Assembly: GCA_002794465.1 (NCBI GenBank)
Contig: MTSL01000186.1
Location: 54,576 to 81,619, forward strand
Source: Paramicrosporidium saccamoebae KSL3
Taxonomy: Eukaryota > Fungi > Cryptomycota
Direction: 5' to 3'
Length of the DNA stretch: 27,044 bases
The notes below the pieces were generated by a model. That model was not told the origin of the DNA and made no database searches. It was given only the letters and a program-made list of their open reading frames with translations. A program made the translations under genes and the position numbers. Of the stretch, positions 9,640 through 26,604 are shown piece after piece. Every line of letters begins with the position of its first letter. The first letter of the stretch is position 1.

Positions 9640-11481
9640 ATGCAAGGGACCGATCAACCGGATGCCAAACGCAGTCGTAAAGGTAAGATTATGGAATGCC
9701 ACTTGTAAAATTTGCAGACCGAAGCAGGGATATAAAACGAAGCAGAATTAATACAGGCTCCATTCCAGGTATGGCCATCGCGCATACATGACCTTGTAGA
9801 ACTGGAAACTATGCCGGGAACACTAGACCCGCTCGTGTTTGCCAAGGCACGAACCGCCGAAGTTCTTCTACTCAAAAAGGAAATCCAAGATGGCGAATTC
9901 CGCGGTGCTCGACGCGTCTTCCAGACCCTCTCCAGGTCTATGAGACGCAGAGCGGCAAGTTACAATATACGCAGACTGCCTGTACGGCTACGTCAGAAGG
10001 CACTCGATGAGGCTGCTAAGGATCCTTCTACAGTGCAGAAAGCAATCAAGAAGCCGCCATGCAGAAGAAGGAGACGAAGAATGGGTGATATTGCCAAAAA
10101 TTTCGAGAGCAGGATGACAAGTAAGAGATGGCTAGAGACACATCTTTGGCATGCAAAAAGGGCAAAGATGGATAACTTATGGGGATATCGGATTGCCGTG
10201 AGGAGCAACGAAAAGTGTCGAAAATCATGCATTAGAGCGAGTGTGGCCAAATGTTTTCTTTATGACTCGTCCTATCATGAAATTGTACAATTTTCGCATC
10301 CATTCGGCGAATTCCTTGAAATGATCGAGCCTCACATTTCTGCTAAAATCCATGCCAACTCTACGACTCTGGGCCATTTTTTTTGGAACACTGATTTGTC
10401 TCATAATGGAATTATTATTGGCCCTGCCAAGCTGATACTCACAGTTCAAGAGGGCCTTCCCATCCTAAGAGCCATTGTTCACCCTTTAATCTCATCAAGG
10501 ATTCAAGTATTATTACCACAGGCCACCGTGGTCCGCGGGGAATACTCCATGTTTGAATTGGAGGGCTCTCAGAGTCCCGAGTTTTTGTCCTGTATTCTAT
10601 CGATGCAATTCAAGTATCCACAAGTATGCAGCTCGAATATTTACGAATGGAGCTGCAAGGATCCCCGTTTCGCCTTTCCTCAAAAATTGACAGATCGGCG
10701 CGAGCCCTGTGACTCGGACTTGACATCAATTGATGGCGATTTTTGGAGCAAGAGCGGGTCAGTACATCGAAAGAGCCAAAAGGAGATTAACGATTTACTC
10801 TCGCTCCACACAATTCCTGGGACAAAACTCCAGCCTACAGAGGCAGATCCAAGAATGCCTGTTTTGTTAATTTTTGAGACTATGGAGCAGATAATCCGGC
10901 GCAAACATCACCGAGTGACTGTGATAGTTCCCAAAGGATGGGGTTCTGCACTCTGGAGGTCGCTTATATTTGCAGGCGCACGATTCGGGGGCCTTGAAGA
11001 ACGTCAAGCTGTTGATGCCGAGCATGGACGGCCTGTTTTCCCCAATGACTACCCCTCCTCATCTGCATATCTGCCGTATTCTGAAAAACTATTTAAAGAA
11101 TTGGAGGATAAATGGAACAGACGACCTCCAGCCAAGCGGATTAATTATTCCCGTCTTGGTATCCAACAGCCTTTCAGGATCGATCTCAGTCTTTTGGGTG
11201 AGAATTGCAAAATTTGCAGATTGGAATGTACTGGACGAGGAGTCCCAGAATGGAATGGACGTGTATTTATAGATGGTCAGCTCGTTGGATTTATTACCAC
11301 AGGGTTCTATTCCCAGACTCATGGAAAGGGCATAGCCTTTGCCACATGTGCGATCCAAAACCTGCCCATTCCAACCCAACAACCGACTGACCCAATTCAA
11401 CAACTGACGTGCCCTATCCAAGTTTCCATTTCAGGCTTTGAGGGGCCCCATAGATCTGCAATCATTACCAAAATATTTTAG
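9640..11481 (+). CDS. POP1: RNase P/MRP subunit Pop1, 591 aa, 3 exons
   Basis: Two small 5' exons (9640-9682, 9718-9768; introns 35, 31 nt) splice in frame to 9800-11481. Motifs FQTLSRSMRRRAASYN, WLETHLWHAKRAKM, WGYRI, VPKGWG..LW, E.G...FPNDYP, NRRPPAKRINY, GFITTG.YS...GKG.A. Confidence 0.9.
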
Positions 11482-11506
11482 AAAACAACCTGTTTAATGA
11501 ACCAAC

Positions 11507-12892
11507 TTATTTTGGAAGCATAGCCTCCAACTGCCGAATTCGGATAGACTTTTGCGCCAGATCGCTCTTTAGTTGCCCATTCTCCTTGCTCAGACTACGC
11601 CAAGCCTCACGCAGAGCCTCTTCAGTAGTCGGCTCTTCCTTCTCTTCTTTCAAGACCGTACTGGATATGGACATTTCACGACGTGGTGCCACAAATGACA
11701 CTTCCATGCTAGCCCGACGCGGACAGCTAGTTTTGCCGGCAAAAAACTCTGATGCCGACAAGGCGGGTTCACCCGATAATGCATCGGGATAGATATCGTG
11801 AGCAAAATTGGTGGCACTGTCACGACGAGGCACCTTGAACGACAGCGGTTCCAGAATGGGCTGACTCCCATAGACTTTGATGAAGCGCGCAATCTCATTG
11901 TCATTGACACTGACGACCCGTTTTGGAAGTAGGGCCAATCCTCGCTGCGGATCAACCGACTTGTACTCGGAAAGAGGAAAGAGATAGGGCGCCTCAGACA
12001 ATAGCTCATAGTATCGGATGTTTCCGTCACCCCGACCAGCGAGGTACACAAGTCCACAATCGGGATCAAAGAATGGCAAAAGTGGTCCGGAAGCCGAATC
12101 GACAGAAATCATTGTTAGCGGTGTTTCCAAATTGCGCGAATCCCACAAGGCCACTTCCCGTTCACTCGAGCGTCCAAATCCGGTGGTCAGAAGCTGATTA
12201 GTTTCGCCTAACCATTGCACACGGATTCCCTTTACACCAGTATGTGCTTGCTTCCTCTCTGCCACCGCTGCTGTGCCGGAGCGTGGGTCAAAGATGCGCA
12301 CTGTCTTATCGCGACTGGTGGTGGCCAGTTTATCCCCAACAAGAGCCCAACTCTGGTCCAGTACTGCGTCAGTGTGTCCCGTTAGAGTCTGATGGGCTAC
12401 TCCCTTGGTCACATCCCAAAGACGGACTGTCATGTCGTGACTGGCACTGGAAAGCACTGCCTCGGCAGCAGGATGCCACGTCAGATCGACAATTCGTCGT
12501 TCATGACCCTTTAGCTCTCCTGCATATTCAGAGGTCGTCTCGGTAGGTCCGCCCTCGGGCACATTCCAAACAAGGATTCGGCCGTCATCTCCCGCCGACG
12601 CCACAACATGATCATTAAATGGACTCCAGTCGGTATCTAAAACGGGTCCTGTATGTCCGGTATAGAGGGGCACTGCGGTGGGGAGGCGTCCCGTCTTTTC
12701 CAATGGCTGGACGAGGAATGCACCGCCGCCCGCGCTATCCCAATGGACAGAGAGGAAGAGTGGGTTGGCTTTGACAAGGTGCCAATCGTTGCTGTCGAGC
12801 GAGACTGACGCACCCTCATAGCACGACTCGCGCTTGCTCCCAGTCCCAAAGACGTGGCGATACTTGCTACTGCGGACTATCTTGGCTGTCAT
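11507..12892 (-). CDS. CRN1: Coronin (actin-binding WD40 protein), 461 aa
   Basis: Starts MTAKIVRSSKYRHVFG; WD40 repeats (GHTGPVLDTDWSPFNDHVVAS), LAGRGDGNIRYYE, QRGLALLPKR, FKVPRR, C-terminal coiled coil. The true ATG is at 12892; the ORF-track extension to 12973 runs into the intergenic duplication. Confidence 0.97.
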   Translation of the reverse strand: MTAKIVRSSKYRHVFGTGSKRESCYEGASVSLDSNDWHLVKANPLFLSVHWDSAGGGAFLVQPLEKTGRLPTAVPLYTGHTGPVLDTDWSPFNDHVVASAGDDGRILVWNVPEGGPTETTSEYAGELKGHERRIVDLTWHPAAEAVLSSASHDMTVRLWDVTKGVAHQTLTGHTDAVLDQSWALVGDKLATTSRDKTVRIFDPRSGTAAVAERKQAHTGVKGIRVQWLGETNQLLTTGFGRSSEREVALWDSRNLETPLTMISVDSASGPLLPFFDPDCGLVYLAGRGDGNIRYYELLSEAPYLFPLSEYKSVDPQRGLALLPKRVVSVNDNEIARFIKVYGSQPILEPLSFKVPRRDSATNFAHDIYPDALSGEPALSASEFFAGKTSCPRRASMEVSFVAPRREMSISSTVLKEEKEEPTTEEALREAWRSLSKENGQLKSDLAQKSIRIRQLEAMLPK

Positions 12893-12900
12893 TCGTGTGT

Positions 12901-13196
12901 TTGTATCGTTATGTCTGTCAACACAAGTTACTATGGTTGGACCGCAAAACCTGAATATGAAATATTCATGCAATTTCCCCTTTTGGGAGTGGTAGTTTTA
13001 CGTGACATTACAAAATATTTTAATCAGAAAACTAAAGTATTCAGATCACTATTGTATTGTTATGTCTGTCAACACACACACACACACACAAGTTGCTGGA
13101 CCGCAAAGCCTAAATATGGAATAGTCTCACACAATGTCCCCTTCGTCACTACAGTTGTACGGATATATCACAAAATACTTTAATTGAAAAACTAAA
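12901..13196. repeat. Diverged two-copy tandem duplication (period about 151 nt) filling the coronin-CLIP170 intergenic gap
   Basis: 12901-13036 and 13052-13196 share ttgtat(c/t)gttatgtctgtcaacac, tggaccgcaaa(a/g)cct(g/a)aatatg, cccctt, cacaaaata/tacaaaata and aaaactaaa in the same order. Confidence 0.9.
13072..13090. repeat. (AC)9 microsatellite
   Basis: Read directly; the equivalent position in the other duplicate copy has only (AC)2. Confidence 0.95.
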
Positions 13197-13201
13197 AAGG
13201 G

Positions 13202-16200
13202 TCAAGCCGAAAAAGGATTCGGATCATTGATTGCTATACCAGGATCCCTGGAGGAGCCACTACCACACTGATCCGCCGCATGGCCGGTTTGCTTGCATAT
13301 ACTACAGACATTTCCATCCAACACCAGGCCAGGAGTACGTCCAGCACCATGTGCTTCCAACGATGCGAGCAGCTCTTCATACTCCTCATGGAGTTTTTCC
13401 ACATCCACATCGGCGGGCTTGTAAATGCGCATAAATGACGCCACCGATTTTATGGGATTTAGGATACGCCATGATGATTCTTGATGTGTTTGATGGAGTT
13501 CGTCAATCAGATGACCCGCCTTGGTGAGGAGTGCATGCTGTTGCTTAATTCCAACCTCTGTTTTCAGTGTCTTTAGAGCCTCGCGGATCGTGATCAACTC
13601 AGCTTCGAGAAGGGCCTTTTCGTGTTCCAAGGACACGTTCATTCGCTTTAGATGGACCTTTTCGGCAGTAACCTGGTCGTTCTCCGCTTGTAAGCGCTTC
13701 ACCACATCCGACTCTGAACCTTCCTTTCCAGGCTGTACAATCTCTTCCAGTCTCGTACGGAGTTGCTGGATCTCCTCCTCCTTGACCGAAAGTCTCTCTC
13801 CCGCCAGCTGCAAATCTTCTTTCAAAGCATTAAACTTGACAGCAAGCCGTTTCCTACTCTCGTCTGTATTTTCCAAATCAGCAATCCTTTGCTGCAAATC
13901 TAACAGTTCTTTCTCGGCCAAATCAAGCATTTCCTTCTTGTGAGTATTATGAGACTCGAGTTCTTTCCTCTTTTTAATTTCCTCATCAAGAGTTCGCTGT
14001 AGTGCGTGAGAATCTGCATTGCCCCCACTGACAGACGGGGTCGTTTCCAACTCTCGACACCTTTCCTGAGCAGTAGCAAGTGCTTGCTCCAACTTTTCAT
14101 TTTGCACCCGTAAATGCCTAAGCTCGTCGTACAAAGAGTCCAACTTGGAAATGTCATGCTGAGAAAGGCTGCCATCACGTAGATATGTCTCCTGCAGTTT
14201 TTCAAGACTGTCCTTTTGCTTCGTCAACTTTGTAATCAAAGATTCCTTGTCCTGCAGCATTTCGCGGGCAGTTTTTAGGTCCTCCTCCAACCTTGAGACA
14301 GCGGCAGTCGGTTTCTGGCCATCAGTGTCAATAACCATAAGACCCTCAGTCGAGCCCCGCTGGCTAGTCTGCAATTCTTGAATCTTCATCCTTAATATTT
14401 CCACCTCTCGGGAATCTGCATTCTGTGCGGCCTTTTGTAACCGTTCGCATTCCAACCGAGATTGCTCCAATGCCTGAGCGTAATCGTTTCGTTCTTTGAT
14501 AATCTTTTCCAGCGGCTTGTCTTCGCTGTATTTTACTTGAAGTTCATGCTGCAAATCTTCAATCTTCTTTTGCAAGATTTCCGCATTAGTCTCGCTCACT
14601 CTCGATTTGCTTCCGTATTCCCGCTTCAAATTTTCAATCACGACTTCTTGGCTCCTTACTGACTTCAAAGTCTCCCTGTGGCTCGCCTCAAGACGCGCTA
14701 GCTCATCAGTTCGGGTGTTAAGAAGCTCAGTCAGAGTATCAATCCGGTGATTTGCGCCATCAAGCTCAGTAGTCGCGTTGCGGAATTTGCCAGAATCATC
14801 GTGAAGAGCGCTCCGCAGAATATCCCTCTCTCTGACAAGATCGTCAATTTCCTTTTTCAAAATGTCAACTTCCGATTGGTTTCTCACAAGCGGGCCAGAA
14901 AACTCTTCAATCTTTGCCTTGGCCTTGTCCCTCTCCAGCTCTGTAGCGCTCAGCCTAAGCTGGATTGCATAGAGCTCAGTGTCCTTTTTCTTTTCCAGCT
15001 CATCACGATCCCTCTTGAGACTGTCAATTTCAGCTTGCAATTCGGAAACTTTGAGATCAAAATCGTCCTCCCGCTCCGAAGATAGCGGAGTTTCAGATTT
15101 GCCCACCACAAATTGAGCCTGATTGGCATATCTCCGCTTATACTTTGCAATCTGGTGCATCAAATACTTTTCCTGAGTCTCCTTTGCCTTGTATAGCTCG
15201 GCAAATTTGTGCTGTTCTTCGACAAGCTGAGATGCGATTCTCTCCAAAGAAACTTGAGAGTTTGCATCTGCTGACGAAACAATCGATAGGACCGCCTCCT
15301 TATTAGAGTGAGGCCGCGAGATGGATGCAACTTGACGCTGCAATTCTTCAATTCGCGCATCTTTCTCCGCTGCTTCAGCAGTAAATTTGATATAATTTTC
15401 CTCCAAAGAAGTGCGTAGTGCCTCAATCTGAGCACGATGCTTGACCTCTAGCTGCGCAGCATCCTGATAATCGATCAGCTTACTTTGCAAATTGGAGACT
15501 TGTGCATTTCCGAGTTCTTTTTCTTTTTTGAGAAAGTCGACTTCTTGCAACAGCTCGGATATTTTGGCATTTTCCTTGTGTAGCAGCCTAATTTCCTCCT
15601 CCTTTTCTTTTATACGTTCTTCGTATTTACGACATACGGCGACAGTCTCCGAATTGAGCTTTTCCAAATCATCCGCTTCCTGAGCGAGTATTTCGTTCCT
15701 TGCTCCGGTCAGAGTTTTGTTCTCCCCCACAAGCGCCTCATACTTTTGCTTTACAGTATTCAATTCGGCAGTCAACTCTCTCAATTGCGGACTGGTATCA
15801 CTAGACACGAGCTCGCTAAATTTGGCTCGCAGATCAGCAATTTCCTTACGAAGAACAGAGCGATCGCGATTGAGATTTGCAACATTTGAAGCATTTTCCC
15901 GTATTTGCGCCTTCAAGTTGTCTTCGATTTCATCCTTTGCCTGTAGCTGCTCCTGCACGAGTCGCAATGTTTCCTCTGCACCAAAAACTTTGTTTTTCGC
16001 TTCTTCTAGTCTTTGTGCCAATTCCAGCCTCTCGTTCAGTAGCGCCTCTTTGTCTTGTTCAAGAAATCGTTGAGACTCTTTCATTGCAGCAGCTTCCTTT
16101 GGATTGCTTGAAGCCGTCTTCTCGCGCTCCGCCTTTAGCTGCAAAAAGTTTACCCGCTTGGCCTGTCTATCATAGCGACCCAACGATTTCTCATAGTGAT

Positions 16201-16858
16201 CCAATGCAGCCAACAGCCTCTCGCGATTCAATAGATAATCGCTGATGTCCTGGTGATCAGAAATCTGAAGCCTCAAAGCATTTAGCCCAGACTTTGCATG
16301 CTGCATCTCGGCATGGCGCTTCTCCAATTCAAGTTCCATGTTAGCGAGTGAATATTTATCAGTGTCGTTGACATTTGATATGGCCGAGGAATTCTTTTCC
16401 CGCAGCAATTCCACATCTAATTTGGCCATAGTTGGTGGCGTTTGAACATGTGCTGTGGCGGCAGAATAACTCTGCTTTGTGGTAATCATCGGAAGTGACT
16501 TTGTGATGGTGGTTTGGACTGGAGTTTTGACTTGCTCCGTCGTTATAGGAGGCGCTCTGCCGCTCCATTCCTCAGTCAGTGGTGTTTTGCTACTCCATTC
16601 GCCGTGGGTCGGGGCAGAATTTTTCCTCAACCGGGCAGAACGTCCCTCGGATGCCAATTTGCTCGGATGTACAAAGACAGCCTTGTTTGGCTCCGTTCTG
16701 AAATATTCCACACCTTCAACTGTCCCGTCATGTTTTCCCGTGGAATTATCTAGCTCAATGCCAGCCCAGACACCTTGCCTGAATTGTGTGGGGCCAAGAA
16801 AGCGGAGAGTCCCTGTGCTACCGTCATCTAAGGATACCCGGTCACCTACCGAGAACAT
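13202..16858 (-). CDS. BIK1: CAP-Gly, long coiled-coil and C-terminal CCHC zinc-knuckle protein (CLIP-170/Bik1/Tip1-like), 1218 aa
   Basis: N-terminal CAP-Gly (GTLRFLGPTQFRQGVWAGIELDNSTGKHDGTVEGVEYF), about 900 aa of heptad-rich sequence, terminal CSICKQTGHAADQC (CX2CX4HX4C). The knuckle favours CLIP-170 over p150glued. Confidence 0.75.
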   Translation of the reverse strand: MFSVGDRVSLDDGSTGTLRFLGPTQFRQGVWAGIELDNSTGKHDGTVEGVEYFRTEPNKAVFVHPSKLASEGRSARLRKNSAPTHGEWSSKTPLTEEWSGRAPPITTEQVKTPVQTTITKSLPMITTKQSYSAATAHVQTPPTMAKLDVELLREKNSSAISNVNDTDKYSLANMELELEKRHAEMQHAKSGLNALRLQISDHQDISDYLLNRERLLAALDHYEKSLGRYDRQAKRVNFLQLKAEREKTASSNPKEAAAMKESQRFLEQDKEALLNERLELAQRLEEAKNKVFGAEETLRLVQEQLQAKDEIEDNLKAQIRENASNVANLNRDRSVLRKEIADLRAKFSELVSSDTSPQLRELTAELNTVKQKYEALVGENKTLTGARNEILAQEADDLEKLNSETVAVCRKYEERIKEKEEEIRLLHKENAKISELLQEVDFLKKEKELGNAQVSNLQSKLIDYQDAAQLEVKHRAQIEALRTSLEENYIKFTAEAAEKDARIEELQRQVASISRPHSNKEAVLSIVSSADANSQVSLERIASQLVEEQHKFAELYKAKETQEKYLMHQIAKYKRRYANQAQFVVGKSETPLSSEREDDFDLKVSELQAEIDSLKRDRDELEKKKDTELYAIQLRLSATELERDKAKAKIEEFSGPLVRNQSEVDILKKEIDDLVRERDILRSALHDDSGKFRNATTELDGANHRIDTLTELLNTRTDELARLEASHRETLKSVRSQEVVIENLKREYGSKSRVSETNAEILQKKIEDLQHELQVKYSEDKPLEKIIKERNDYAQALEQSRLECERLQKAAQNADSREVEILRMKIQELQTSQRGSTEGLMVIDTDGQKPTAAVSRLEEDLKTAREMLQDKESLITKLTKQKDSLEKLQETYLRDGSLSQHDISKLDSLYDELRHLRVQNEKLEQALATAQERCRELETTPSVSGGNADSHALQRTLDEEIKKRKELESHNTHKKEMLDLAEKELLDLQQRIADLENTDESRKRLAVKFNALKEDLQLAGERLSVKEEEIQQLRTRLEEIVQPGKEGSESDVVKRLQAENDQVTAEKVHLKRMNVSLEHEKALLEAELITIREALKTLKTEVGIKQQHALLTKAGHLIDELHQTHQESSWRILNPIKSVASFMRIYKPADVDVEKLHEEYEELLASLEAHGAGRTPGLVLDGNVCSICKQTGHAADQCGSGSSRDPGIAINDPNPFSA

Positions 16859-16888
16859 CTACATCATTAGCAGGATGATTCAAAGTAC
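16859..16888 (-). other. Putative 30-nt 5'UTR intron ending immediately before the CLIP-170-like ATG
   Basis: GTACTT...GCTAAT...TAG|ATG has the same size and signals as the other introns; I found no in-frame upstream ATG in the preceding exon. Confidence 0.45.
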
Positions 16889-17464
16889 GTTGCGGGAAGC
16901 AAGAGGGGACGCAAGCGAGGCAGGAATGTTTGCCGCCAATCGACGAATCCGTCGACCAATCAGTGGATCCGCTGCCCCATTAGCAACCACTGACGCGTCA
17001 AACTCTCTCAAATCGAACAGTCGGCCGAATCATAACATGTTGATGCAGTAAGGGGGTCAACTCGCGTTTAGGACAGAATTGATGTACATAGGTTGGTGTG
17101 ACGCCACAGAATGCAGTAGACGCAGAATCACTGATACAAACAAGGTTGTGAAGAAGCTATAGTTCAGTATTGAAAAGCATCCTCTTACTGACGACTCTAG
17201 CCCATATGTCTATATGTCTATGTTATCTCACAATCTGGTGTATTGAGAGTGACTACCTATCTATGAAAGGCGACATATGCTTAATAGAGCACTATCACAT
17301 CAGCAGATCCTTTATCATCTCGAGCTCATACATACGATACACCACACCACGTAATTTAGTGAATAATAACTCTCTCGCTTTAAAATACGGTAAGCCGCCT
17401 AGTCTGTTGTGATTGCTGATATTGACTGTGACTACCCTGGCGGCTTTGATACTCATCTTTCAAG

Positions 17465-19477
17465 ATGCCTGTAAAGCGACAACAGACTCTTCCGTTGCAT
17501 CCACCCATCTCCAAAGACAAGGAGACATTTGTTGTGGATGGTCTCACCATCCGTCCTGAACTTGACGGTGCCCGTTTTGGTCGTCACTATCGTCGTCGTC
17601 CTGACCGTCATCCGTTCATCGTAGACGTGCCAAGTAGCATCTTTTTTGCCACGCGGGCGATGCCGCAGATTAATACACGGTACCCGGTGGTGGTGGGCGA
17701 GTCTTTTTGGCGCCTGACCGCCTATGTGGATTCAGTGCCGGCCCGGAAGGAGGAACGAGTGCCTGGAAAGTGTCCCCATGTGTTGGTGAGGGGCGTGAGT
17801 GGATGTGGAAAATCGTACTTGATGGCTGCTGCCAGTGCATTATTGGGATTTGGACCACAGTCCATGCGTCCTCAGCAGCTGAATTATTTGAGCTCTGATT
17901 ATCGGACAGTCTTTATTGGGGACTGTAAGAGATGGCTAGAGTCTGACGACCCGCTGACTTATTTCAGAATGGAGCTACTTGCCGGATTCAGAGACAATTG
18001 CCAAGATGTCGATGACCATCATAGTCCGGATCATCTGGGCTGTTTGGTTTGTGTGGAACCGTTTACACGAGTTGAGCAGATTGGACACTTTATGGAGAGG
18101 TGCTGTCGTTGGGTCGAGGAGCATCAGCCCGACACACTTTTTGTATTTTTCATCGACCAGGCTGAGGAGCTAATGTCCCGTCCCGACTCTATTCCCTACC
18201 AGGTAGTGTCTTTGCTTGTCAAAATGCAGTCTCCCCTCGTCATATTCTCAGTAACATGTCCTGTTGGTTCGTCTTTTCCATTCCCGTATGGTACGGTGAT
18301 TGATATTCCATATCGGGTGACCTCTGCCGAGTTTGCCAAGCATCTCGAGGTTCATTCTGGACTGGAAGAGAAGGCTTTGTACAAAGATGTAAATTGGTGG
18401 AAGGACATGCGACTCTGGACTGGAAGTATCCCCAGTGAAATCACCGAACTCGCTAGGATGCCTGGTCCGTCTGTCCCACATAGGTTAAAGCTGTACCGCA
18501 AAATGGTGTTACAGAAGACGCAGGCCTCGTTCCTTGCCGTTAGCAAGCTCGATGGCAAGCAGAGGAACGTGTTGTTGATTGTCGTGTTTGCCATCATTCT
18601 GCGGGTGCCCATGGACATGTCGGGAGAGTTCAACTTGCCAAACATTATGGCCTTGGGCCCTACCATCACTGATCATTTTTTGTTAAACTGTCTACAAGCA
18701 TTTTACCACACTAGCGACGGCATCATTACCATGAGAGACGTCCCTGCTACCACTTCAATGGCCGTGCACATGGCATTGTGTTCAGTGAGCATTATGAGCT
18801 CAATCATACGTTCCTGGCCCAACTTGTTTGAAAATGTTGTCCATGCAATGATGCAAAGCAAGCTGCTCTGTTCCGAGGCCAAACGAAGAATGTCTCGGTT
18901 CTACACCCACGCCAAGCTGCTTTGGGGCAAACCAGATTGGTCCTTTGAGGGCAGCAATGAGATGGGCGACACGATCCGCTTCAAATTCCGTCAGCCTCGA
19001 GTAGTGATATTCGCAGGACAGACTCCCGTTCCGGCCTTTATTATGCCCAATGGACCTGACGCCGAACATCACGGAGTGGTCGGAAATGGCGATTACGATG
19101 CGATTGCTTTTGTTCCTGGTCGCACGAGTTATTGGTTCTTTGACCTGTTCATTTTGGTCCCAGATGACCGTCGTCTCTATGCAATCACCACCAGTACTGT
19201 GGTGGGAACTTGGCTTAAAGAGCTACAGACGCGTGTCGGCCCGATGCAGCTGCAACAACAACGGGATGATGGACTGTTGACTCCTGTCATTCTGCTGGAT
19301 CATTGGAAGGATGCGTTGCGAAAGGCTGGATTGCCCAAGGTCATAATCAAATGCTGTGTTGTAAAGCCGCTGGATTTAATGATGACCGCTGGTTACAAGC
19401 CACCGGTCGCTACCGACGAGGCTTCAGAGTCTTTGGCTGCACATCTTCAATCATCTGCAGTCATTAAAGATGATTAA
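17465..19477 (+). CDS. Crinkler-like P-loop NTPase plus degenerate restriction-endonuclease-fold protein, 670 aa, single exon
   Basis: Walker A VLVRGVSGCGKS, RTVFIGDCKRWL..DPLTY, Walker B FVFFIDQ, WTGSIP, and C-terminal FVPGRTSYWFFDLFIL..RRLYAI follow the motif order I recall for fungal crinkler-family NTPase-REase proteins. Family call is from memory. Confidence 0.65.
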   Translation: MPVKRQQTLPLHPPISKDKETFVVDGLTIRPELDGARFGRHYRRRPDRHPFIVDVPSSIFFATRAMPQINTRYPVVVGESFWRLTAYVDSVPARKEERVPGKCPHVLVRGVSGCGKSYLMAAASALLGFGPQSMRPQQLNYLSSDYRTVFIGDCKRWLESDDPLTYFRMELLAGFRDNCQDVDDHHSPDHLGCLVCVEPFTRVEQIGHFMERCCRWVEEHQPDTLFVFFIDQAEELMSRPDSIPYQVVSLLVKMQSPLVIFSVTCPVGSSFPFPYGTVIDIPYRVTSAEFAKHLEVHSGLEEKALYKDVNWWKDMRLWTGSIPSEITELARMPGPSVPHRLKLYRKMVLQKTQASFLAVSKLDGKQRNVLLIVVFAIILRVPMDMSGEFNLPNIMALGPTITDHFLLNCLQAFYHTSDGIITMRDVPATTSMAVHMALCSVSIMSSIIRSWPNLFENVVHAMMQSKLLCSEAKRRMSRFYTHAKLLWGKPDWSFEGSNEMGDTIRFKFRQPRVVIFAGQTPVPAFIMPNGPDAEHHGVVGNGDYDAIAFVPGRTSYWFFDLFILVPDDRRLYAITTSTVVGTWLKELQTRVGPMQLQQQRDDGLLTPVILLDHWKDALRKAGLPKVIIKCCVVKPLDLMMTAGYKPPVATDEASESLAAHLQSSAVIKDD

Positions 19478-19586
19478 TCATCTCATAACATTGATGTGAG
19501 AGTATCGTATATATAGGAACCAAAGACCATATAGGGACTAAAAACCTTTAATAGAGATCTTTACTACAATCGAGATTTATTTTACA

Positions 19587-20156
19587 TTACTCGGCCAGTG
19601 ACTTTACAATACCAAGTAGTCTGGAGCAGTCCTTGGATGGCTTTGGTAGAGCCTCCATCAACGCTAGAATACTCCTCCAATCCACCTGTTCCTTGGCCAC
19701 TTTGCCCGTCTTTTTCTCTCCATCCCATTCGCTTCTTCCTACCTCTTGCTCGCTTCGTCCCGTCTTTCTTCCTGCCACGTCCTCTTTATACTTTACACGC
19801 CACTCCTCTAGGTCTCGTTTCGCCGCCTTTGACCGCTCCCCTGCCATTTGCACTGCGGACGCGTCGCGCTCTGCAATTTGACGAGCACGTTCCGTCTTCC
19901 ATTCCTTCATTGCCGCCGTCTCCACTTTGGTCTTTGGGGTGGTGGGAGATGTGACACGCGTATTGGCGGTGGGGCTTGCTATGTAGCTAGCCACCGGTCT
20001 GGGACTAGTAGGGTGCGAGGCATTATTGGGGGCTTCAACGGGTTCGTCCACCTGCATAACATTGTCATTTTCAATTTCAACTGCCTCTAGAGCTTCCAAT
20101 GCCGCCTTTTCCCGGGCGAGAAAGTCCTCCATCGGGTCAGTGGACGGAGCGGTCAT
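19587..20156 (-). CDS. CLC1: Clathrin light chain, 189 aa
   Basis: DFLAREKAAL N-terminal motif, MKEWKTERARQIAERD central helix, DWRSILALM and DCSRL C-terminal motifs. Confidence 0.85.
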   Translation of the reverse strand: MTAPSTDPMEDFLAREKAALEALEAVEIENDNVMQVDEPVEAPNNASHPTSPRPVASYIASPTANTRVTSPTTPKTKVETAAMKEWKTERARQIAERDASAVQMAGERSKAAKRDLEEWRVKYKEDVAGRKTGRSEQEVGRSEWDGEKKTGKVAKEQVDWRSILALMEALPKPSKDCSRLLGIVKSLAE

Positions 20157-20323
20157 ATTGATTGTATTGGCGGAGCCAGGGCTACAGCATTAAATATAAT
20201 TCAGTATGGACCTAGTGAATTTGTGTAAAGTGACTTGTTGCATTATTCAGATCGTGTCGATAGCAAAAACAACATATTCTAGATCTAAAATTCAATAAGC
20301 GTCTCGCAAAGCAGGGGGTGGCA

Positions 20324-22135
20324 ATGACCAAAAAGAGCAAGGAGCACAAGAGGCGACGTCAGGAGCTTTTTGAACAGGACCTAGCTGAGCAAACTCTAAA
20401 GCCGACGCGTATCAAGGTGCAAGCCCCACCTTCTAGCGATGACGAAGAGCCTATGCGCATGTGGGAGCAGGAAAAAGAGTCTTCCAACGCACTCCCGGTC
20501 ATGTCCCACAGCGGCAAGTGGAAGTCTTCTAAGAAGAATATTACTATCCGACCAGAGCACGACCAGAGCCAAGAAGAGGAAGAGCAAGAAGAGGATGAAC
20601 AAGATGTATCACCAAACGGTTCAGAGGCGACAAAAAGCTATGAACAGGTTCGGGATGAATTGGCATCTATTGCTATTGCCATCACTGAGGAAACTGATCA
20701 TGTTGGCAAGTTGAGAGATATGCTCAAATACGTAGATCCCGCTAGGAATTCCGTTCCGGTGGTGCGCTTAGCTTTATTGTCCACTCTTGCCGTAATCAAA
20801 GACATTCTTCCCGGATATTATATTCGGCCACTTAGCGAGGGAGAAAAGGGAACCACTGTGTCAAAGGATATCAAGAAAATTCGTCATTTTGAGGAATCGA
20901 TCCTCGCCGGTTACCGACATTTCTTCAACGTTTTGAAGGGGATAGTGCAGCCAAAGAATCGTCGTATCGCAAAGAGCCGTCTTCCCATTCTACAAATCGC
21001 CTTGACCTGTCTTCACGAGTTGCTGCTGTTTGCCAGCCATTTTAACCATTTTGAAGATGTTCTCAAACTGGTTGCACACTCTTTGACACTTGAAGAGTTT
21101 CCTGACGAGGTGGAGCGCAGTTGCATGGCCTTCCGTCAACTATTTGACACTGACGAGCAGGGACAATCCACCATGCTGGGAGTGCGTCTAATCTCAAATA
21201 TGATCAAGGAGCTCGAATATTCTTGTCCCGTGTCATGGCTAAAGGCGCTAGAGACGGTTCGGCTGCGTTCCGATGTGGCTGGTCGCGCAATCAACCCCAA
21301 AGGCGTCCTTAGAGGCAAAAAGAAGCATCTCTCCCTTCGCGAACGCAAAGAACGAAAGACGAAGCAGGAAGAGATGAAACACATGGCCGAGGCGGAGGCT
21401 ATTGTCAGCAAGGAGGAATTGAACAAATGGAATTCTGAATCGCTCAAATATCTCTTCCGGATCTACTTTGGAGTCCTGAAGCACGCTCCCGAGCCAGAGC
21501 TTCTGCCCCCCATCCTGGCAGGACTGGCGAGACATTCACACCGCATTGGCGTAGAGTATTTTGTTGACCTGCTTCAGGCCTTGAAGCGACTGATGGAGGA
21601 TCACACCAACCTCGACGTAATTCCCGCCCTGCACTGCATCCTTACTGTGGACCGAATCTACTCTATCAATGAGAATCTTGCCGCCATGGATCTCAAATTC
21701 TTTTACAACGCACTGTTTCGTCAGATAGGCAAGTTGTGTTGTCCCCTAGATTGGGATCTGGTGCAAAAGCCTCTGCAGGGATGCATTTCGGCGCTCTTCC
21801 ATCCAAAACGCATAATTCCCACTATCCGAGTTGCCGCGTTTGTCCAACGGATGGCCGATGTCTCTTTGGTATTCCTTAATACAAACCAACCAGGACCAGC
21901 AGTGTTTATGGTGGACAACATTAAGAGCATCCTCACTCACCACAACAGGGCACGGGGTATTCTCGATCGAGATCCGTTTGGACAGGGTGCTTATATGCCA
22001 TCATGCGAAGACCCTGATCTCTGTAACCCCCAGAGTCGCTCCCTCTACGACATTCTCATTGCTATCAAGACCAAGGACAGTCGACAGGGAAAGCTACACA
22101 CGCTAATCTCGGAAATAATCAAACTGACACCATAA
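20324..22135 (+). CDS. NOC3: Nucleolar complex protein Noc3 (CBF/Mak21 family), about 603 aa
   Basis: LALLSTLAVIKDILPGYYIRPL, VSKDIKKIRHFEESIL, SHFNH, ESLKYLFRIYFGVLK, GLARHSHRI, RVAAFVQR, PDLCNP. First ATG 20324; an extra 5' exon (20206-20229, intron 20230-20263) is possible but unproven. Confidence 0.92.
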   Translation: MTKKSKEHKRRRQELFEQDLAEQTLKPTRIKVQAPPSSDDEEPMRMWEQEKESSNALPVMSHSGKWKSSKKNITIRPEHDQSQEEEEQEEDEQDVSPNGSEATKSYEQVRDELASIAIAITEETDHVGKLRDMLKYVDPARNSVPVVRLALLSTLAVIKDILPGYYIRPLSEGEKGTTVSKDIKKIRHFEESILAGYRHFFNVLKGIVQPKNRRIAKSRLPILQIALTCLHELLLFASHFNHFEDVLKLVAHSLTLEEFPDEVERSCMAFRQLFDTDEQGQSTMLGVRLISNMIKELEYSCPVSWLKALETVRLRSDVAGRAINPKGVLRGKKKHLSLRERKERKTKQEEMKHMAEAEAIVSKEELNKWNSESLKYLFRIYFGVLKHAPEPELLPPILAGLARHSHRIGVEYFVDLLQALKRLMEDHTNLDVIPALHCILTVDRIYSINENLAAMDLKFFYNALFRQIGKLCCPLDWDLVQKPLQGCISALFHPKRIIPTIRVAAFVQRMADVSLVFLNTNQPGPAVFMVDNIKSILTHHNRARGILDRDPFGQGAYMPSCEDPDLCNPQSRSLYDILIAIKTKDSRQGKLHTLISEIIKLTP

Positions 22136-22196
22136 TTTGCATGCACAATGGGATTTGTGTTACAATCTGATGTCGTAGATGTATAGACACAATGAC

Positions 22197-22556
22197 GTCT
22201 GGTATGACTAGATTTCGTAAATATAATGGCGTCTGTTATGATCGAATTTCATAATTACAATAGTGTCTAGTATGACTGGATTTCGTAAATACTAAATTGT
22301 CTGCTACAACTGGACTTTATAAAGACCATCTATTCCACAACCTGATTACGTATAATGACGCCCCCACAATACAACCTGATTTCATGCAGCGACACTCACA
22401 GTATCACCCACAGTAGAATCTGATTCATCACAACATTACCCACTGTAGAATCTGACTCATCACAATGTTACCCACAGTAGAATCTGATTCATCACAACAT
22501 CACCCACAGTATAGTCTGATTCGTCACAATATCGCCTACAGCATAATTACAATATC
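22197..22556. repeat. Composite non-coding minisatellite: four 34-nt units, two transitional units, four to five 32-nt units
   Basis: gtct-starting units at 22197, 22231, 22265, 22299; cccac-starting units at 22407, 22439, 22471, 22503 and a degenerate one at 22535; shared core resembling ta.aa.ctgatt. Confidence 0.9.
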
Positions 22557-22588
22557 TCTTCCACGCATCGACGAGTATAAACATTTAT

Positions 22589-22873
22589 TCATTGCGCGAA
22601 ACCACTGCCTTTCCCTTCTTCAGAGTCCTCCAGGATTGGCTCTTTCATCGGAGACTTCCCGATGCTGCCGGCCGAGTTGCTGTGTGGGATGGCGGACGGC
22701 GTAGGGTGCAATTGTCCATGCGTATGGGTTTGGCCCGCTTTGCACATTGCATAGTCGCCACTGTCAAAGTACTTTCTCTCCTGTAGTCGAGTTCGATGGT
22801 GTGTGGCCGCGTCTAACGTTGCTGTGGATTGGCCGGGCGGCGTGGTTGACTGAGTGGGCTGGTCGTCAGACAT
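22589..22873 (-). CDS. IGO1: Endosulfine (Igo1/ENSA/ARPP19), PP2A-B55 inhibitor, 94 aa
   Basis: ERKYFDSGDYAM is the Greatwall/Rim15 phosphosite; HPTPSAIPH follows as in fungal Igo proteins. Start taken at MSDDQP. Confidence 0.9.
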   Translation of the reverse strand: MSDDQPTQSTTPPGQSTATLDAATHHRTRLQERKYFDSGDYAMCKAGQTHTHGQLHPTPSAIPHSNSAGSIGKSPMKEPILEDSEEGKGSGFAQ

Positions 22874-22953
22874 AATGCACTCTGGTGGACAATCTAATCG
22901 AATCAAACGATGGGACCATGTATTCCGAATTTATCCTTATTTAGCAGTTTGGT

Positions 22954-23862
22954 CTAGCCAATGTGGGGACGATTCATATAGGCGTTGAAGTATTGTGACA
23001 GCACATAGTTCATCACCCGCAAATTATCCACGTGCGGCATACTCCTCATCGACTCTCTATCCAATTGTGTCTCAATCTTTACCGTCGGCCTCAGCACCAA
23101 CTGTAGCGCCTGTCCCGTGTTCTCGGCTCGCATCCCACCCAACACCGAACCAAGTGCTTCAAAGTGTACCTCTACATCTGGAAATTTCAGCAAGTCGGAA
23201 GAACGCAGTGTGTAGCAGGAAATGGCTTCCATTGGATTCTCCTCCCGACGAAGGGGGTAGCGCTCCGGATAGCAATCGCGCTTCGACCCTCCTCTTTTCT
23301 GGTATTGCAGGATGAGGCCTCTCTTCTCCAGTCTGTTGTCGTGTCCATGATCCAATGGACGCCAACCCTCCCGCGCTGCATCACCCACCCCACCCACAAT
23401 GTCTGGAAGATAGAATTCACGACACTTTTCCAAAAAATAGAACATTTTCACATTGTGCAGTGTTGTCTTTAGCTTTATCCCCGAGCCCAGTTTTTTGATT
23501 TGCTGGGTCAGCGCGGAAGGGTCAGTCTTTACGACCTTTTTCTTTCCCGCTGCCTTTCTCAGACTCTGCTGTATTAGCGCTCCACGTGCCCGTTCCATCT
23601 CTTTTCTCTGCGCCTCGGTGGCGGTGCGTTGCGCAGGGTCCTCTTGCATTGCATCGCATTCCTTCCCCGTCACCCGCTGGCCTGTCAAAATTTCGAGGAG
23701 ACAGGCCGCCCGGTACTTGGTTTCGTTTGACATTGTCTGGGCTCCTTGGAGGATAATGGAGCATTCAAGCGAATGCAAAGCGGCCGTACGGTCAAAGAGG
23801 GTGAGCATGTCCTCCCTGAGGATGCGCTGAAAGTACTCTTGCAATCTGGACCGGCCCAACAT
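22954..23862 (-). CDS. MRPL7: Mitochondrial large-subunit ribosomal protein uL5m (MrpL7-like), divergent, about 302 aa
   Basis: SRLQEYF..ILREDML, LEILTGQR, KTTL...MFYFLEK....YLP, LLKFPDVE follow the uL5 motif order. The start is uncertain (23862 or 23928). Confidence 0.7.
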   Translation of the reverse strand: MLGRSRLQEYFQRILREDMLTLFDRTAALHSLECSIILQGAQTMSNETKYRAACLLEILTGQRVTGKECDAMQEDPAQRTATEAQRKEMERARGALIQQSLRKAAGKKKVVKTDPSALTQQIKKLGSGIKLKTTLHNVKMFYFLEKCREFYLPDIVGGVGDAAREGWRPLDHGHDNRLEKRGLILQYQKRGGSKRDCYPERYPLRREENPMEAISCYTLRSSDLLKFPDVEVHFEALGSVLGGMRAENTGQALQLVLRPTVKIETQLDRESMRSMPHVDNLRVMNYVLSQYFNAYMNRPHIG

Positions 23863-23882
23863 CTCCGCCTGCAGGGGGGACG

Positions 23883-23913
23883 GGATGACTATATATATAG
23901 GATGACTATATAT
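23883..23913. repeat. 17-nt-period tandem duplication GGATGACTATATAT x2
   Basis: Copies at 23883-23896 and 23900-23913. A non-triplet period suggests this stretch is upstream of the true uL5m start. Confidence 0.8.
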
Positions 23914-24091
23914 GGAGAGAGCGACCATGGATCAGTGCCATTTATTATACACTAGCATTATTAATACAAAACTTGCCATATCCATGGAACTAGAGATTGG
24001 AGCATTAATAGGCACCAACGTTCATAATGTCTAATATATTAGAAACTGACATTGGTGAAATGGCATCAGTAAAGGTCTTTGGACGCATTGC

Positions 24092-24126
24092 GTCACTGGG
24101 GCGCTAGCATGCTAGTGCCCAGTGAC
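24092..24126. repeat. 35-nt near-perfect palindrome in the divergent uL5m/SIP5 intergenic region
   Basis: GTCACTGGGGCGCTAGCATGCTAGTGCCCAGTGAC: 17-bp arms with one bulge and one G-T pair; perfect 12-nt core CTAGCATGCTAG. Confidence 0.85.
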
Positions 24127-24369
24127 ACTCATTAAGACTAATCTTGCCATCATCTGCCAAACTTGGTACCTTACGACCGATGGAATAGGAGGTCTCAGTC
24201 CAACACTCTTGGTCCAATTCTCAAACCCCGGCGGCCAACCGGCGAAATAGAGCCTTATGATTGGAGCGGACAAAATTTCAGTGCTTCCTAATTGGGTACA
24301 CTAGAGCCTGTCCAACTAAGCACCAGTGGGCCGGCCAGTAAAAGGCACCCGCTGGCTGCATCGAGCAAG

Positions 24370-25274
24370 ATGGGCAACGCACTGCGCAAGACTCGAGACG
24401 GACCCGTCGATGGCGGAGCCACACGCACGAACGTACCCCCAACAACGGAATATGATGCGGGGGCCGTTGAGAAGCTGATCATGAGTAAGAGATTGGCTCC
24501 ATTTTATGAGGGAGAGCCTGATGCGTCGGTGGAGGGTAATGTCTCGGATACATCCCTTTCGGGGGGAGAGGAGCTCAAAAAGGAGAAACGACGACTGTTT
24601 AGACGATCGAGTAAACAAAGAGGCCACTATGAAGCGCAGGTAATTGAGCATTTCTTGCGAGACCGTTCCACTGAATGTCCCATCTGTTTCCTGGTAAGTG
24701 TCCAAGTGTCTATGCTGATCTGTAGTGCTTTCCGAGAAACATTAACAAAACTGTCTGTTGTAACCAAGCCTTGTGCACGCAATGTTTTGTAAATCTCCGC
24801 CGTCCGCCGTCTGGCCGCACCCTAAGTTGTCCGTTCTGTAATCGTCGGGACTTTTCCATCCGGTATTGTGCGCCCTTGCTGGTTCTGGAAGAGGAAGCTG
24901 GCATCTCGAACATATCACGTCCAAGTCCTGTGAAATGCGAGGCAATTCGGGCCTACCGTCCCACCCCACCACAAGCCCCGCCAAGTGCGGCATATCGTGC
25001 GGCTACGCGGTATCAGGGATACAACGGCCCACCCTTTAGTGTTCGCTCAGGCAGCCGAGCAACGACCTACGGAGGCGGTGTACTTGTGCTGTACAATGAG
25101 CAGGGTCGGCCAGTGTACTTTCCAGATACGCAGCGCACTGCCACATATGGCTCGCCCTACGGCTCCCAGCTCCCAAGACAAAATGCAAATAGGAACAGAA
25201 CAACGTATTCGCAACAGAGTGCATCATATTCGTCGCGGTATCGATCTGGCACTTCACGGTACAATCTCTCGTAA
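24370..25274 (+). CDS. SIP5: Sip5-like RING-type zinc-finger protein, 290 aa, 2 exons
   Basis: Exons 24370-24693 and 24726-25274 (32-nt intron). MGN start, VDGG, LIMSKRLAPFYEG, ECPICFLCFPRNINKTVCCNQALCTQCFVNLRR...CPFC match the Sip5 pattern. Confidence 0.85.
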
Positions 25275-25389
25275 CGTCCTCATTTCTCTAGCTACGCCTA
25301 TCTAAACACCACACTTTATTAATTGCTGACATAAAATCTCATCTTGATTCTAATTAGTATCGTTCTTAGTACGTAGATCCTAACGGTTC

Positions 25390-26448
25390 CTAGTATGAAA
25401 TATAGGACATGGACTGGAGATCGCTCATTGGCATCACAGACGGTTCCCATCCTGAGGGATATTGCAATTTTGACACATAATCCTGTCGTTGCGCTGCTAC
25501 AATCTGCACGGCCTGCTTCGTAACCACGTCGGGAGACCATGGAACCTTTAGCACCACGTTCAGCTCATACTCGCATTCTATCAGCTTGGATCGAGTTGAC
25601 GGTTCTGTGTCATGTGGCAGCGATAGCTGGATGTATCGGTCGGCTCGGTCCCCCGCCCGCACTCCGGGAGAGCTGGCTTTTATGACGGTTCCGTTCCCAT
25701 AAAACGTGTCCGACCCCGCATGAACCGACAAGTCCTTCCGCAACTTTAGTGTAAACGCCTCCAAATCCACCTGTGACTCGGAATTGTCCACAATCAGATG
25801 CAATTGAACCGTCTCGCCCGGACTATATGCATTCTTGTCGATATTGGCCGACATTGTCACAGTCCCCTTGGGAATGCAGCACAAAAAGGTCACTTTGGCC
25901 TCTTTCAGTGTATCCGATGACATGAGCATATTTCTCAGTGGCTCATTGATCAAAATGTCCTGACTATGATACAAATTCGGCTTCAACATTCCCGGCACCG
26001 CGACTTCTGCCTCCACATGATATCTCAAACTCGCCTGTAAGCTTCGCGAATACTGTCTCTTGTTGTAAATTTCAAACGTTCCAGGCAGTTTTTGATCCAA
26101 CTGAAACTGAAATGGGAATACAAAGTTCCCGCTGCTCAGCGTACTCTTGGTGGCGTAGATACAGTAGCGACGTCGGAAAAAGGTATGGTGACCATTAACG
26201 CGCTCGGTATATGTTTCGACTATGTTCTTTTGAGGATCGTGAGGATCTTTGACTGTGCGACTTCGGGTCACGTCGAATTCAGTCAACTCATTTCCATTTA
26301 TCTTTAGATAGACTCCATCGACGTGGAGTGGCTGCACGACGGATAGAGTCACTTGGCCAGTTACCAAATCGCCAGCATAATACTGTTGTTTGTCAGTGTG
26401 GATATGGATAATGTTGCTTTGGCCGAATAATCGTCCAAGGAATGTCAT
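25390..26448 (-). CDS. Arrestin-domain protein (N and C domains), 352 aa
   Basis: YYAGDLVTGQV, FVFPFQFQLDQKLPGTF, LRYHVEAEV, IDKNAYSPGETV, PSTRSKLIECEYEL, VPWSPD. The ORF-track start is a TTG; the ATG is at 26448 (alternative 26484). Confidence 0.9.
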   Translation of the reverse strand: MTFLGRLFGQSNIIHIHTDKQQYYAGDLVTGQVTLSVVQPLHVDGVYLKINGNELTEFDVTRSRTVKDPHDPQKNIVETYTERVNGHHTFFRRRYCIYATKSTLSSGNFVFPFQFQLDQKLPGTFEIYNKRQYSRSLQASLRYHVEAEVAVPGMLKPNLYHSQDILINEPLRNMLMSSDTLKEAKVTFLCCIPKGTVTMSANIDKNAYSPGETVQLHLIVDNSESQVDLEAFTLKLRKDLSVHAGSDTFYGNGTVIKASSPGVRAGDRADRYIQLSLPHDTEPSTRSKLIECEYELNVVLKVPWSPDVVTKQAVQIVAAQRQDYVSKLQYPSGWEPSVMPMSDLQSMSYISY

Positions 26449-26604
26449 TCCGTCGCTCCCCGGCAATGCTGCGAATGACAACATGGCATCCCTTAACCAA
26501 TCAAAAGTAGACGCCAAAACAATGAACTTTTAGGTGAGGCTCTAACTTGGAGCTTCTAAATTTTGATTAATGGTTTATGAATTGCTAACTTTAGACTACT
26601 CGGT

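Follow-up and report, generated by a model that had tools for sequence, protein, structure and literature searches.

STAND (signal transduction ATPases with numerous domains) NTPases, which include Apaf-1/CED-4, the NACHT/NLR proteins, AAA_16/MalT-like proteins, nSTAND1 and Avs, share a tripartite module of nucleotide-binding, helical and winged-helix domains. In STAND and AAA+ ATPases, an Asp or Glu directly follows the Walker B Asp; P-loop ATPases of the ASCE (additional strand, conserved glutamate) class use the carboxylate at this position to activate the attacking water. A second group, the Crinkler/RHS (CR) proteins, is presented in a review as toxins or effectors that come from prokaryotic, transposon-linked modules of an NTPase and a restriction endonuclease (REase) (PMC5289972). 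According to that review, Zhang et al. 2016 redefined the C termini of Crinkler (CRN) proteins, and most of those in Phytophthora read "NTPase + helix-turn-helix (HTH) + REase" after a ubiquitin-like LxLFLAK header (PMC5289972). The RHS proteins of trypanosomes are large P-loop proteins that act as core transcription factors (PMC6393297). Here, we compare these systems with a gene that we call X, found in a stretch of 27,044 nucleotides from Paramicrosporidium saccamoebae KSL3 (assembly GCA_002794465.1, contig MTSL01000186.1, positions 54,576 to 81,619 of the forward strand). This whole stretch is referred to below as the window, and positions are counted from its first nucleotide. An earlier note, made from the DNA letters and a list of open reading frames (ORFs), had described X as a lone Crinkler-type NTPase without a standard header and with an apparently inactivated nuclease domain, and had offered it as a candidate for either a host-directed effector or a domesticated NTPase switch. 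We conclude instead, with a probability of about 0.7, that X is a single-copy gene, inherited vertically, for an intracellular ATPase of the STAND/ORC (origin recognition complex) structural class that works as a nucleotide-state switch and is not a secreted effector. The observations in the earlier note were largely correct, and its interpretation was right only in its cautious half, the domesticated NTPase switch, which fits the data. The gene is as follows.

17465..19477, + strand: gene X, complete single-exon ORF of 670 amino acids (aa) plus stop (ORF list, homolog colinearity, and the ratio of nonsynonymous to synonymous substitution rates, dN/dS).

The reading frame is uninterrupted, as previously noted. 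It is colinear with full-length homologs, of which 15 are close and about 15 distant, and is therefore plausibly a single exon. Comparison with the relative at locus L012, which is 93% identical, gave a dN of 0.035, a dS of 0.72 and a dN/dS of 0.049. X is clearly a genuine gene under strong purifying selection and not a chance ORF. Among 5.8 billion protein clusters, searched through a word index, there were 15 homologs with 93 to 40% identity, none of them named, and since the clusters that hold them contain only 1 to 3 sequences each, we see no expansions of the family. An exhaustive phmmer search of 1.84 billion representative proteins found 21 relatives at an E value of ≤0.001, again without a name or family, and nothing further at that threshold; those that it added share the length and architecture of the family and are 21 to 46% identical. 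Searches with the family alignment and with a profile of the C-terminal domain, together with a scan of JGI metagenome contigs, recovered only known members or fragments, and tblastn of X against plasmids gave no match. Only about 30 sequences make up the family, almost all of them metagenomic, from varied metagenome and sequencing-run assemblies (one labelled activated sludge) and with a single representative from an NCBI assembly (GCA_047514055.1). Single copy is judged here from the relatives and clusters, the source genome being covered by the window only. The 606-aa protein P0001 (L012, positions 1 to 1906) is a contig-end truncation in which tblastn homology reaches nucleotide 2 (query aa 38), and this closest relative of X is probably full length. 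Sought as evidence of transcription, poly(A) was not found on a 2.2-kb Logan contig.

Invariance of residues was counted across 22 family members, and the conservation of domains is given as identity in close, mid and far relatives of X. The features of the N-terminal two-thirds of the protein, all on the + strand, are as follows.

17465..17575, +: aa 1-37, variable disordered tail (pLDDT, the predicted local distance difference test, below 50; 30%/10%/6% identity in close/mid/far relatives).
17576..17764, +: aa 38-100, family-specific conserved N-terminal extension (alignment; helix 73-90).
17765..18364, +: aa 101-300, P-loop nucleotide-binding domain (weak Pfam matches; Foldseek).
17792..17815, +: Walker A, GVSGCGKS, aa 110-117 (G110, G115, K116 and S117 invariant, 22/22).
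17921..17935, +: DCKRW with invariant D153 and W157 (both 22/22), just past strand beta2 (145-151).
18032..18052, +: His/CxxC insert, H190-L-G-C193-L-V-C196, in a loop of the NTPase domain (alignment).
18140..18169, +: Walker B, FVFFIDQAEE, aa 226-235, with a natural Asp-Gln (alignment and profile matches).
18389..18472, +: aa 309-336, helical domain with a STAND-like GxP motif, RLWTGSIPSE (helices 309-330).
18473..18754, +: aa 337-430, winged-helix domain, helices and a beta-hairpin at 405-429 (predicted secondary structure).

Modeling places residues 100 to 430 in a STAND/ORC-type module of nucleotide-binding, helical and winged-helix domains. The full-length AlphaFold2 model, built from a 16-sequence alignment (mean pLDDT of 73 and predicted template modeling score, pTM, of 0.63), is mostly disordered over aa 1-76, Rossmann-like alpha/beta at 100-300 and helical at 309-402, followed by the beta-hairpin. 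Foldseek searches of this model against the PDB put CED-4 on top (E value of 1.9e-7, probability of 1.00), with Apaf-1 and NLRP5 complexes (probability of 1.00), Avs3/Avs4 (0.98), Avs5 and Roq1 also among the matches; ORC4/ORC5, Cdc6/Orc1 and the archaeal ATPase SSO1545 (2fna) were returned as well. At the level of sequence, X gave only P-loop matches in Pfam, NCBIfam and PADLOC, all of them subthreshold; these include, both within aa 101-240, AAA_16 over aa 101-236 (E value of 0.002, 19.1 versus a required 32.6 bits) and nSTAND1 (E value of 0.045, 13.8 versus 27.1 bits). Across the family the same weak signal recurs, with AAA_16 in 20/22 members (best E value of 2.6e-6), nSTAND1, NPHP3_N and AAA_22 in 10/22 each and NACHT in 4/22. 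A search of PDB sequences with X as a single sequence gave no match.

Several elements of the modeled module resemble those of STAND proteins. Besides a Walker A of the form GxxGxGK[ST], which the earlier note had correctly called intact, X has the "h.h.P...E(F).." strand-helix after beta4, a GxP-like WTGxxP and a winged-helix His. The helical-domain motif reads R-x-W-T-G-(G/S)-x-P-x-E (W318 in 20/22 and G320 in 21/22 members), and that of the winged helix Q-x-F-Y-H-(P/T)-x-D-G (H415 in 20/22), with P427 invariant (22/22). Judging from their positions in the model, WTGxxP and H415 would be equivalent to the canonical STAND GxP and His motifs. Other elements belong to the family itself. D153 and W157 are embedded in a conserved GDCxRWxxSxDPLxYFRxEL stretch between beta2 and beta3 that corresponds to no known motif. 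The insert H-x-G-C-x-x-C-x-E-P-F is present in the close and mid members and in P0020 and absent from P0021, P0022, P0024, P0025, P0027 and P0030; it may form a small metal-binding knuckle, with zinc a speculative ligand.

The first 100 residues or so had previously been taken for a novel header, which the alignment does not support. Residues 1 to 37 are a hydrophilic, disordered tail, and aa 38-100 (RRPDRHPF...FF.TRAMP...RY.VVGESFWRL.AY.DSVP) end in a helix that precedes the P-loop strand and are the most conserved segment of X in close and mid relatives (79% and 54% identity). This extension is continuous with the NTPase domain, and X has no header, whether new or known, that forms a domain of its own. 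The reported absence of a signal peptide and of LFLAK was confirmed: the maximal Kyte-Doolittle mean is 1.17 in 15-residue windows over the first 75 residues, direct reading of X reveals no LFLAK or HVLV motif, and Pfam Crinkler does not match X at an E value of ≤10.

The Walker B motif is one of the points at which X departs from canonical STAND proteins. FFIDQ (aa 228-232) had also been called intact, and this holds for the magnesium-binding D231, which is invariant (22/22), but all 22 members follow it with Gln (Q232), and the usual catalytic acid is missing; E234 is present in 21/22. When the family profile was searched against PDB sequences, only P-loop matches were returned, led by Rix7/NVL chains that bear Asp-Gln. 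One such chain carries the label "Rix7 mutant," and we take these chains to be engineered Glu-to-Gln variants. Since Gln occupies the position of the activating carboxylate, X is predicted to bind ATP and to hydrolyze it slowly, barring a substitute carboxylate, for which D153 at the end of strand beta2 or E234 (Walker B +3) may be candidates. The X family thus has a natural Asp-Gln Walker B, a substitution otherwise engineered to trap AAA+ ATPases.

The C-terminal part of X carries the following features.

18782..19399, +: aa 440-645, C-terminal alpha/beta domain (AlphaFold2 pLDDT of 90, pTM of 0.87).
18869..18904, +: CSEAKRRMSRFY, aa 469-480, invariant Cys-x-Glu that starts a basic helix (alignment and model).
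19109..19144, +: FVPGRTSYWFFD, aa 549-560, with P551 and D560 (both 22/22), D560 at the start of a beta-strand.
19175..19195, +: LYAITTS, aa 571-577, the strand expected to carry (D/E)xK in a PD-(D/E)xK nuclease (alignment).

This region is a single alpha/beta domain of 200 residues without repeat matches, and its place after the P-loop NTPase and the winged-helix/HTH region supports the order of an NTPase before a C-terminal domain given in the earlier note. Modeled alone (aa 440-650, 13-sequence alignment), it consists of three helices, the last at about 470-487, a three-stranded meander (492-516) and a loop, followed by strands at 546-551, 561-565 and 570-575, three helices, a strand at 627-632 and a final helix. 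Its identity in close/mid/far relatives (72%/46%/24%) is similar to that of the nucleotide-binding domain (68%/45%/28%), and it is as constrained as the ATPase domain. C469 and E471 are invariant (22/22), R475 is present in 21/22 members and W614 in all 22. The conserved polar site beside an Arg-rich helix suggests, in the model, ligand or nucleic-acid binding or a noncanonical catalytic center. An identity with Ulp1/SENP proteases (probability of ≤0.30) was considered and rejected, there being no invariant His and the Cys standing before the Asp, contrary to the order in clan CE.

The same domain had been read as an inactivated PD-(D/E)xK nuclease that retained the Asp of YWFFD and had lost the upstream Glu helix and the Q/ExK residue. 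The Asp is indeed kept, as the invariant D560, and the LYAITTS strand, which reads (Y)A(I/L/V)(T/S)(T/S) family-wide (A573 in 20/22), contains neither Lys nor an acidic residue in any of the 22 members. The Glu helix, however, is not missing, for the invariant C469-x-E471 opens the helix immediately before the beta-sheet. Because (D/E)xK is missing from the whole family and yet C469, E471 and D560 are invariant, a decayed nuclease is unsupported; with A-x-(T/S) in every member, any inactivation would not be recent. Foldseek searches with the model returned nothing significant from the PDB (best E value of 0.24, a uracil phosphoribosyltransferase), with no REase-fold protein in the top 50, and BFVD gave a best E value of 0.058, with PD-(D/E)xK, Cas4 and DUF559 entries at probabilities below 0.1. 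Similarly, a profile of the domain found no match among PDB sequences or in Pfam, and no PD-(D/E)xK Pfam family matched any of the 22 members. The order of secondary structure is compatible with the alpha-beta-beta-beta-alpha-beta core of an REase if an insert of ~60 residues, the meander, is allowed; D560 would then take the place of the "PD" Asp and LYAITTS that of (D/E)xK. Altogether, the structural comparison leans against an REase fold without being decisive, and the assignment is unproven.

We asked whether X behaves as an accessory gene, as it had been labelled, by comparing its surroundings in relatives with enough flanking DNA. Its nearest neighbors are as follows.

13202..16858, - strand: CAP-Gly coiled-coil (CLIP-170-like) protein gene, conserved neighbor (PF01302; synteny).
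16859..17464, no strand: divergent intergenic region of 606 bp between the CAP-Gly gene and X (head-to-head arrangement).
19587..20156, - strand: clathrin light chain gene, conserved neighbor (PF01086; synteny).
20318..22135, + strand: NOC3 gene, conserved neighbor (PF07540 in relatives; PDB NOC3 matches).

The earlier description of the flanks as conserved cytoskeleton and trafficking genes is thus borne out, and the other neighbors of X in the window (coronin, POP1, endosulfine and an arrestin-domain protein) are likewise ordinary eukaryotic genes. The slot CAP-Gly / X / clathrin light chain (-) / NOC3 (+) was found in L001, L004 to L010, L012, L014 and L015. The sole exception is L011, where one flanking gene differs, on one side only. 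The head-to-head layout of X and the CAP-Gly gene is retained in L001, L004 to L010 and L015, and the intergenic region between them is presumed to be a bidirectional promoter. Identity of X at these loci is 68 to 69% for L001 and L004 to L006, 61% for L008, 60% for L010, 41% for L009 (the metagenome labelled activated sludge) and 40% for L007 (the NCBI assembly). At L014 it falls to 27% (tblastn) to 32% (phmmer), and the slot is nevertheless the same, with the order beyond it (NOC3, endosulfine, an uncharacterized gene, SIP5 and arrestin) identical to that in the window. Over a longer span (window positions 9811 to 26517), the order Erv1, POP1, coronin, CAP-Gly, X, clathrin light chain, NOC3, endosulfine, orf324, SIP5, arrestin is kept relative to L004, L009 and L014 even though orthologs are as little as 23 to 40% identical. 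Synteny around X is unusually deep for a eukaryote.

Relative to its neighbors, X changes slowly. Against L001/L004, X is 68 to 69% identical, coronin 63%, NOC3 52 to 53%, POP1 45%, clathrin light chain 42 to 43% and the CAP-Gly protein 34 to 39%, so that X is conserved about as well as coronin and better than the other four. Against L009, the corresponding values are 41% for X, 38% for coronin, 33% for POP1 and 28% for clathrin light chain, and at the farthest locus, L014, the 27% of X is comparable to NOC3 (33%) and arrestin (23%). X is among the most constrained genes in its block. Given its fixed slot, its single copy and a conservation at the level of coronin, we regard X as a core lineage-specific gene and not an accessory one, a view to which the low dN/dS also conforms. 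The NTPase does not literally group with a housekeeping AAA+ family, which had been named as an outcome that would speak against the Crinkler reading, but X does have the behavior of a STAND-type housekeeping gene confined to its lineage.

Some of our results weigh against a STAND/ORC-class switch. The Foldseek TM-scores are low (0.17 to 0.22, by query length), with only part of the multidomain model superposing, and every Pfam match of X lies under its gathering threshold. STAND proteins normally have repeat sensor domains and follow the Walker B Asp with an acidic residue; the family shows neither. Slow hydrolysis is predicted from the Asp-Gln motif by itself, and the cellular function that we propose is one that we infer from fold and conservation only. 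Compared with STAND NTPases more generally, X differs in lacking LRR (leucine-rich repeat), WD40 or TPR (tetratricopeptide repeat) sensor repeats as well as any death-fold, TIR or CARD effector, in the invariant Gln that stands where they have Asp or Glu, in its own N-terminal extension and C-terminal domain, and in being single-copy, slowly evolving and below every Pfam gathering threshold.

The alternative that survives best concerns ancestry and is compatible with a nucleotide-state switch: X may be a domesticated, header-less descendant of a Crinkler/RHS-type "NTPase + HTH + REase" protein with a nuclear housekeeping role, its C-terminal domain being a diverged PD-(D/E)xK fold. We consider this possible but doubtful. 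The site in the C-terminal domain would then be noncatalytic or rearranged, with E471 on alpha1, D560 at beta2 and a Lys or Arg supplied from a helix. Like CR proteins, X is eukaryotic, lacks a classical signal peptide and places an HTH-type region and then a small alpha/beta domain, in which an Asp is conserved, after an NTPase; its P-loop NTPase, helical/winged-helix region and small alpha/beta domain follow one another as in most Phytophthora CRN C termini described, after Zhang et al. 2016, in PMC5289972. The helix with E471, the strands at 546-551, 561-565 and 570-575, the helix at 578-590 and the strand at 627-632 would fit an REase core with an inserted meander, and the 13 residues from D560 to the beta3 position are a typical spacing. 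Furthermore, header-less RHS proteins have core transcription roles (PMC6393297). However, taking the family definitions from the reviews PMC5289972 and PMC6131194 and testing membership of sequences with Pfam models, we found that neither Crinkler (PF20147) nor RHSP (PF07999) matched any of the 22 members at E values up to 1, and the phmmer search reached no relative beyond the X family at an E value of ≤0.001; the Crinkler membership claimed for X finds no support in these searches. X also differs from CR proteins in having no ubiquitin-like, LFLAK or HVLVxxP header and no detectable sequence similarity to them, in not being multicopy or fast-evolving, in lying outside repeat-rich DNA and in lacking (D/E)xK, which is absent from the entire family. 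The C-terminal model, for all its pLDDT of 90, has no REase-fold match at a useful score in the PDB and none at a probability of 0.1 or more in BFVD, and an insertion of roughly 60 residues between the putative alpha1 and beta1 would be unusual. The C termini of RHS/CR proteins probably carry a motif resembling "FD ... Q.T". Trypanosome RHS proteins offer a precedent for P-loop proteins as core nuclear factors and not effectors. They form, however, a multigene family that retroelements interrupt; X has one copy only, and PF07999 matches 0/22 members.

Less probable, and in our view unlikely, is that X is an NLR-like intracellular immune or self-defense STAND sensor, an analog of Avs that oligomerizes and activates a nuclease-like C-terminal effector. 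Such a role would accord with the Foldseek similarity to CED-4, Apaf-1, NLRP5, Roq1 and Avs3/4/5, with the conserved acidic and Cys residues (a putative pocket) of the C-terminal domain and with weak PADLOC matches to P-loop defense ATPases. These last matches, however, span only the P-loop (25 to 50 residues) at weak E values, and X has no repeat or other recognizable sensor domain. Immune STAND proteins, moreover, typically evolve fast and are multicopy and polymorphic; X has one copy, in a syntenic position, and is strongly constrained.

We give still less weight to X as a divergent ORC/Cdc6-like AAA+ loader that places its winged helix on DNA in replication or chromatin, which we judge quite improbable. 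Foldseek did return ORC4, ORC5, Cdc6/Orc1 and RFC-type chains at E values of about 1e-4, and a winged-helix domain does follow the ATPase domain, an arrangement also seen in the archaeal ATPase family (PF01637, SSO1545, 2fna). STAND proteins nonetheless outscore both ORC and the archaeal ATPases in Foldseek; X itself has no match to either group at the level of sequence and differs from both in its C-terminal domain. Pfam ORC-CDC6-like matches are limited to 1/22 members (E value of 0.047), Walker B is Asp-Gln instead of Asp-Glu, and a family of about 30 sequences is not a universal replication factor.

That an endoparasite delivers X into the cells of its host as an effector, in the manner of Crinklers, is scarcely credible: a loose architectural likeness to CRN C termini, a source organism that might be parasitic and the fact that CRN secretion can be unconventional (PMC5289972) are set against a protein with no secretion signal, LFLAK/HVLV header or Pfam Crinkler match, held as a single copy in a fixed slot in relatives down to about 30% identity, evolving at a dN/dS of 0.05 with conservation on a par with coronin, and found in assemblies of varied origin that include activated sludge.

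Returning to X as a STAND/ORC-class switch, a mechanism can be proposed in which X binds ATP and would hydrolyze it slowly since Gln replaces the canonical catalytic carboxylate, or else the invariant D153 or the nearly invariant E234 may substitute for it. X might then work as a nucleotide-state switch in the manner of STAND proteins, the state of the nucleotide being relayed through the winged-helix domain, with its near-invariant H415, to the C-terminal domain. There, the polar pocket and the basic helix may bind, and possibly cleave, nucleic acid or another phosphate-bearing partner within the cell. C469, E471, R475 and D560 are putatively clustered in a pocket, and H415 putatively contacts the nucleotide.

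A bolder and rather unlikely extension is that X represents an undescribed eukaryotic family that joins a STAND-type ATPase with a "trapped" Asp-Gln Walker B to a Cys-x-Glu...Asp domain of new fold, serving as a core and possibly essential factor in a deep, barely sampled lineage. Its origin might then lie in a domesticated transposon- or Crinkler/RHS-like NTPase-nuclease module, in parallel to the recruitment of RHS proteins to transcription in trypanosomes. If X is a conserved intracellular switch, it cautions against effector calls that rest on motif resemblance alone and shows that STAND-class switches need not be immune or effector genes but may serve as core genes that evolve slowly. A confidently modeled domain of 200 residues without a structural neighbor is a tractable target for structure and function, and X, with about 30 sequences and a stable gene order, could mark an undersampled eukaryotic lineage. 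The practical importance of X is modest pending its function.

The remainder of the window offers some further observations. Its genes are intron-poor and tightly packed, with their order preserved at very low protein identity, and scans with Rfam models and for tRNAs found no match in it. A 324-aa ORF (22954 to 23928, -), without a Pfam match, is 65 to 72% identical in close relatives and 39 to 40% in L009 and L014, where its syntenic position is the same; besides X, it is thus another conserved orphan gene. Another ORF of 410 aa (7511 to 8743, -) is also without a Pfam match. The ORF at 6110 to 7105 (+) matches PhosphMutase (PF10143) and Metalloenzyme (PF01676); because the match begins at profile position 59, an upstream exon is likely. 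We take this ORF to be an archaeal ApgM-type cofactor-independent phosphoglycerate mutase in a eukaryotic gene neighborhood.

Other genes bear on the kind of organism to which the window belongs. The lineage appears poorly sampled, since databases hold so few relatives of X and only one of these is from an NCBI assembly. The mitochondrial ribosomal protein MRP-S28 (PF10213) is encoded at 1976 to 2422 (-), from which it follows that mitochondrial translation is retained, and its presence argues against a highly reduced parasite of microsporidian type. The window also carries SIP5, an ART-type arrestin and endosulfine, which are typical of fungi and their relatives. NOC3 scores 200 bits against human NOC3L versus 169, 150 and 139 bits against the other three PDB NOC3 chains, presumably fungal, and coronin (11507 to 12973) has its best PDB scores, about 360 bits, with mammalian coronin-1A/1B/1C. 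Together, the NOC3 and coronin scores, highest with human and mouse chains and not with those of yeast, suggest a slowly evolving, possibly early-branching, opisthokont-like lineage.

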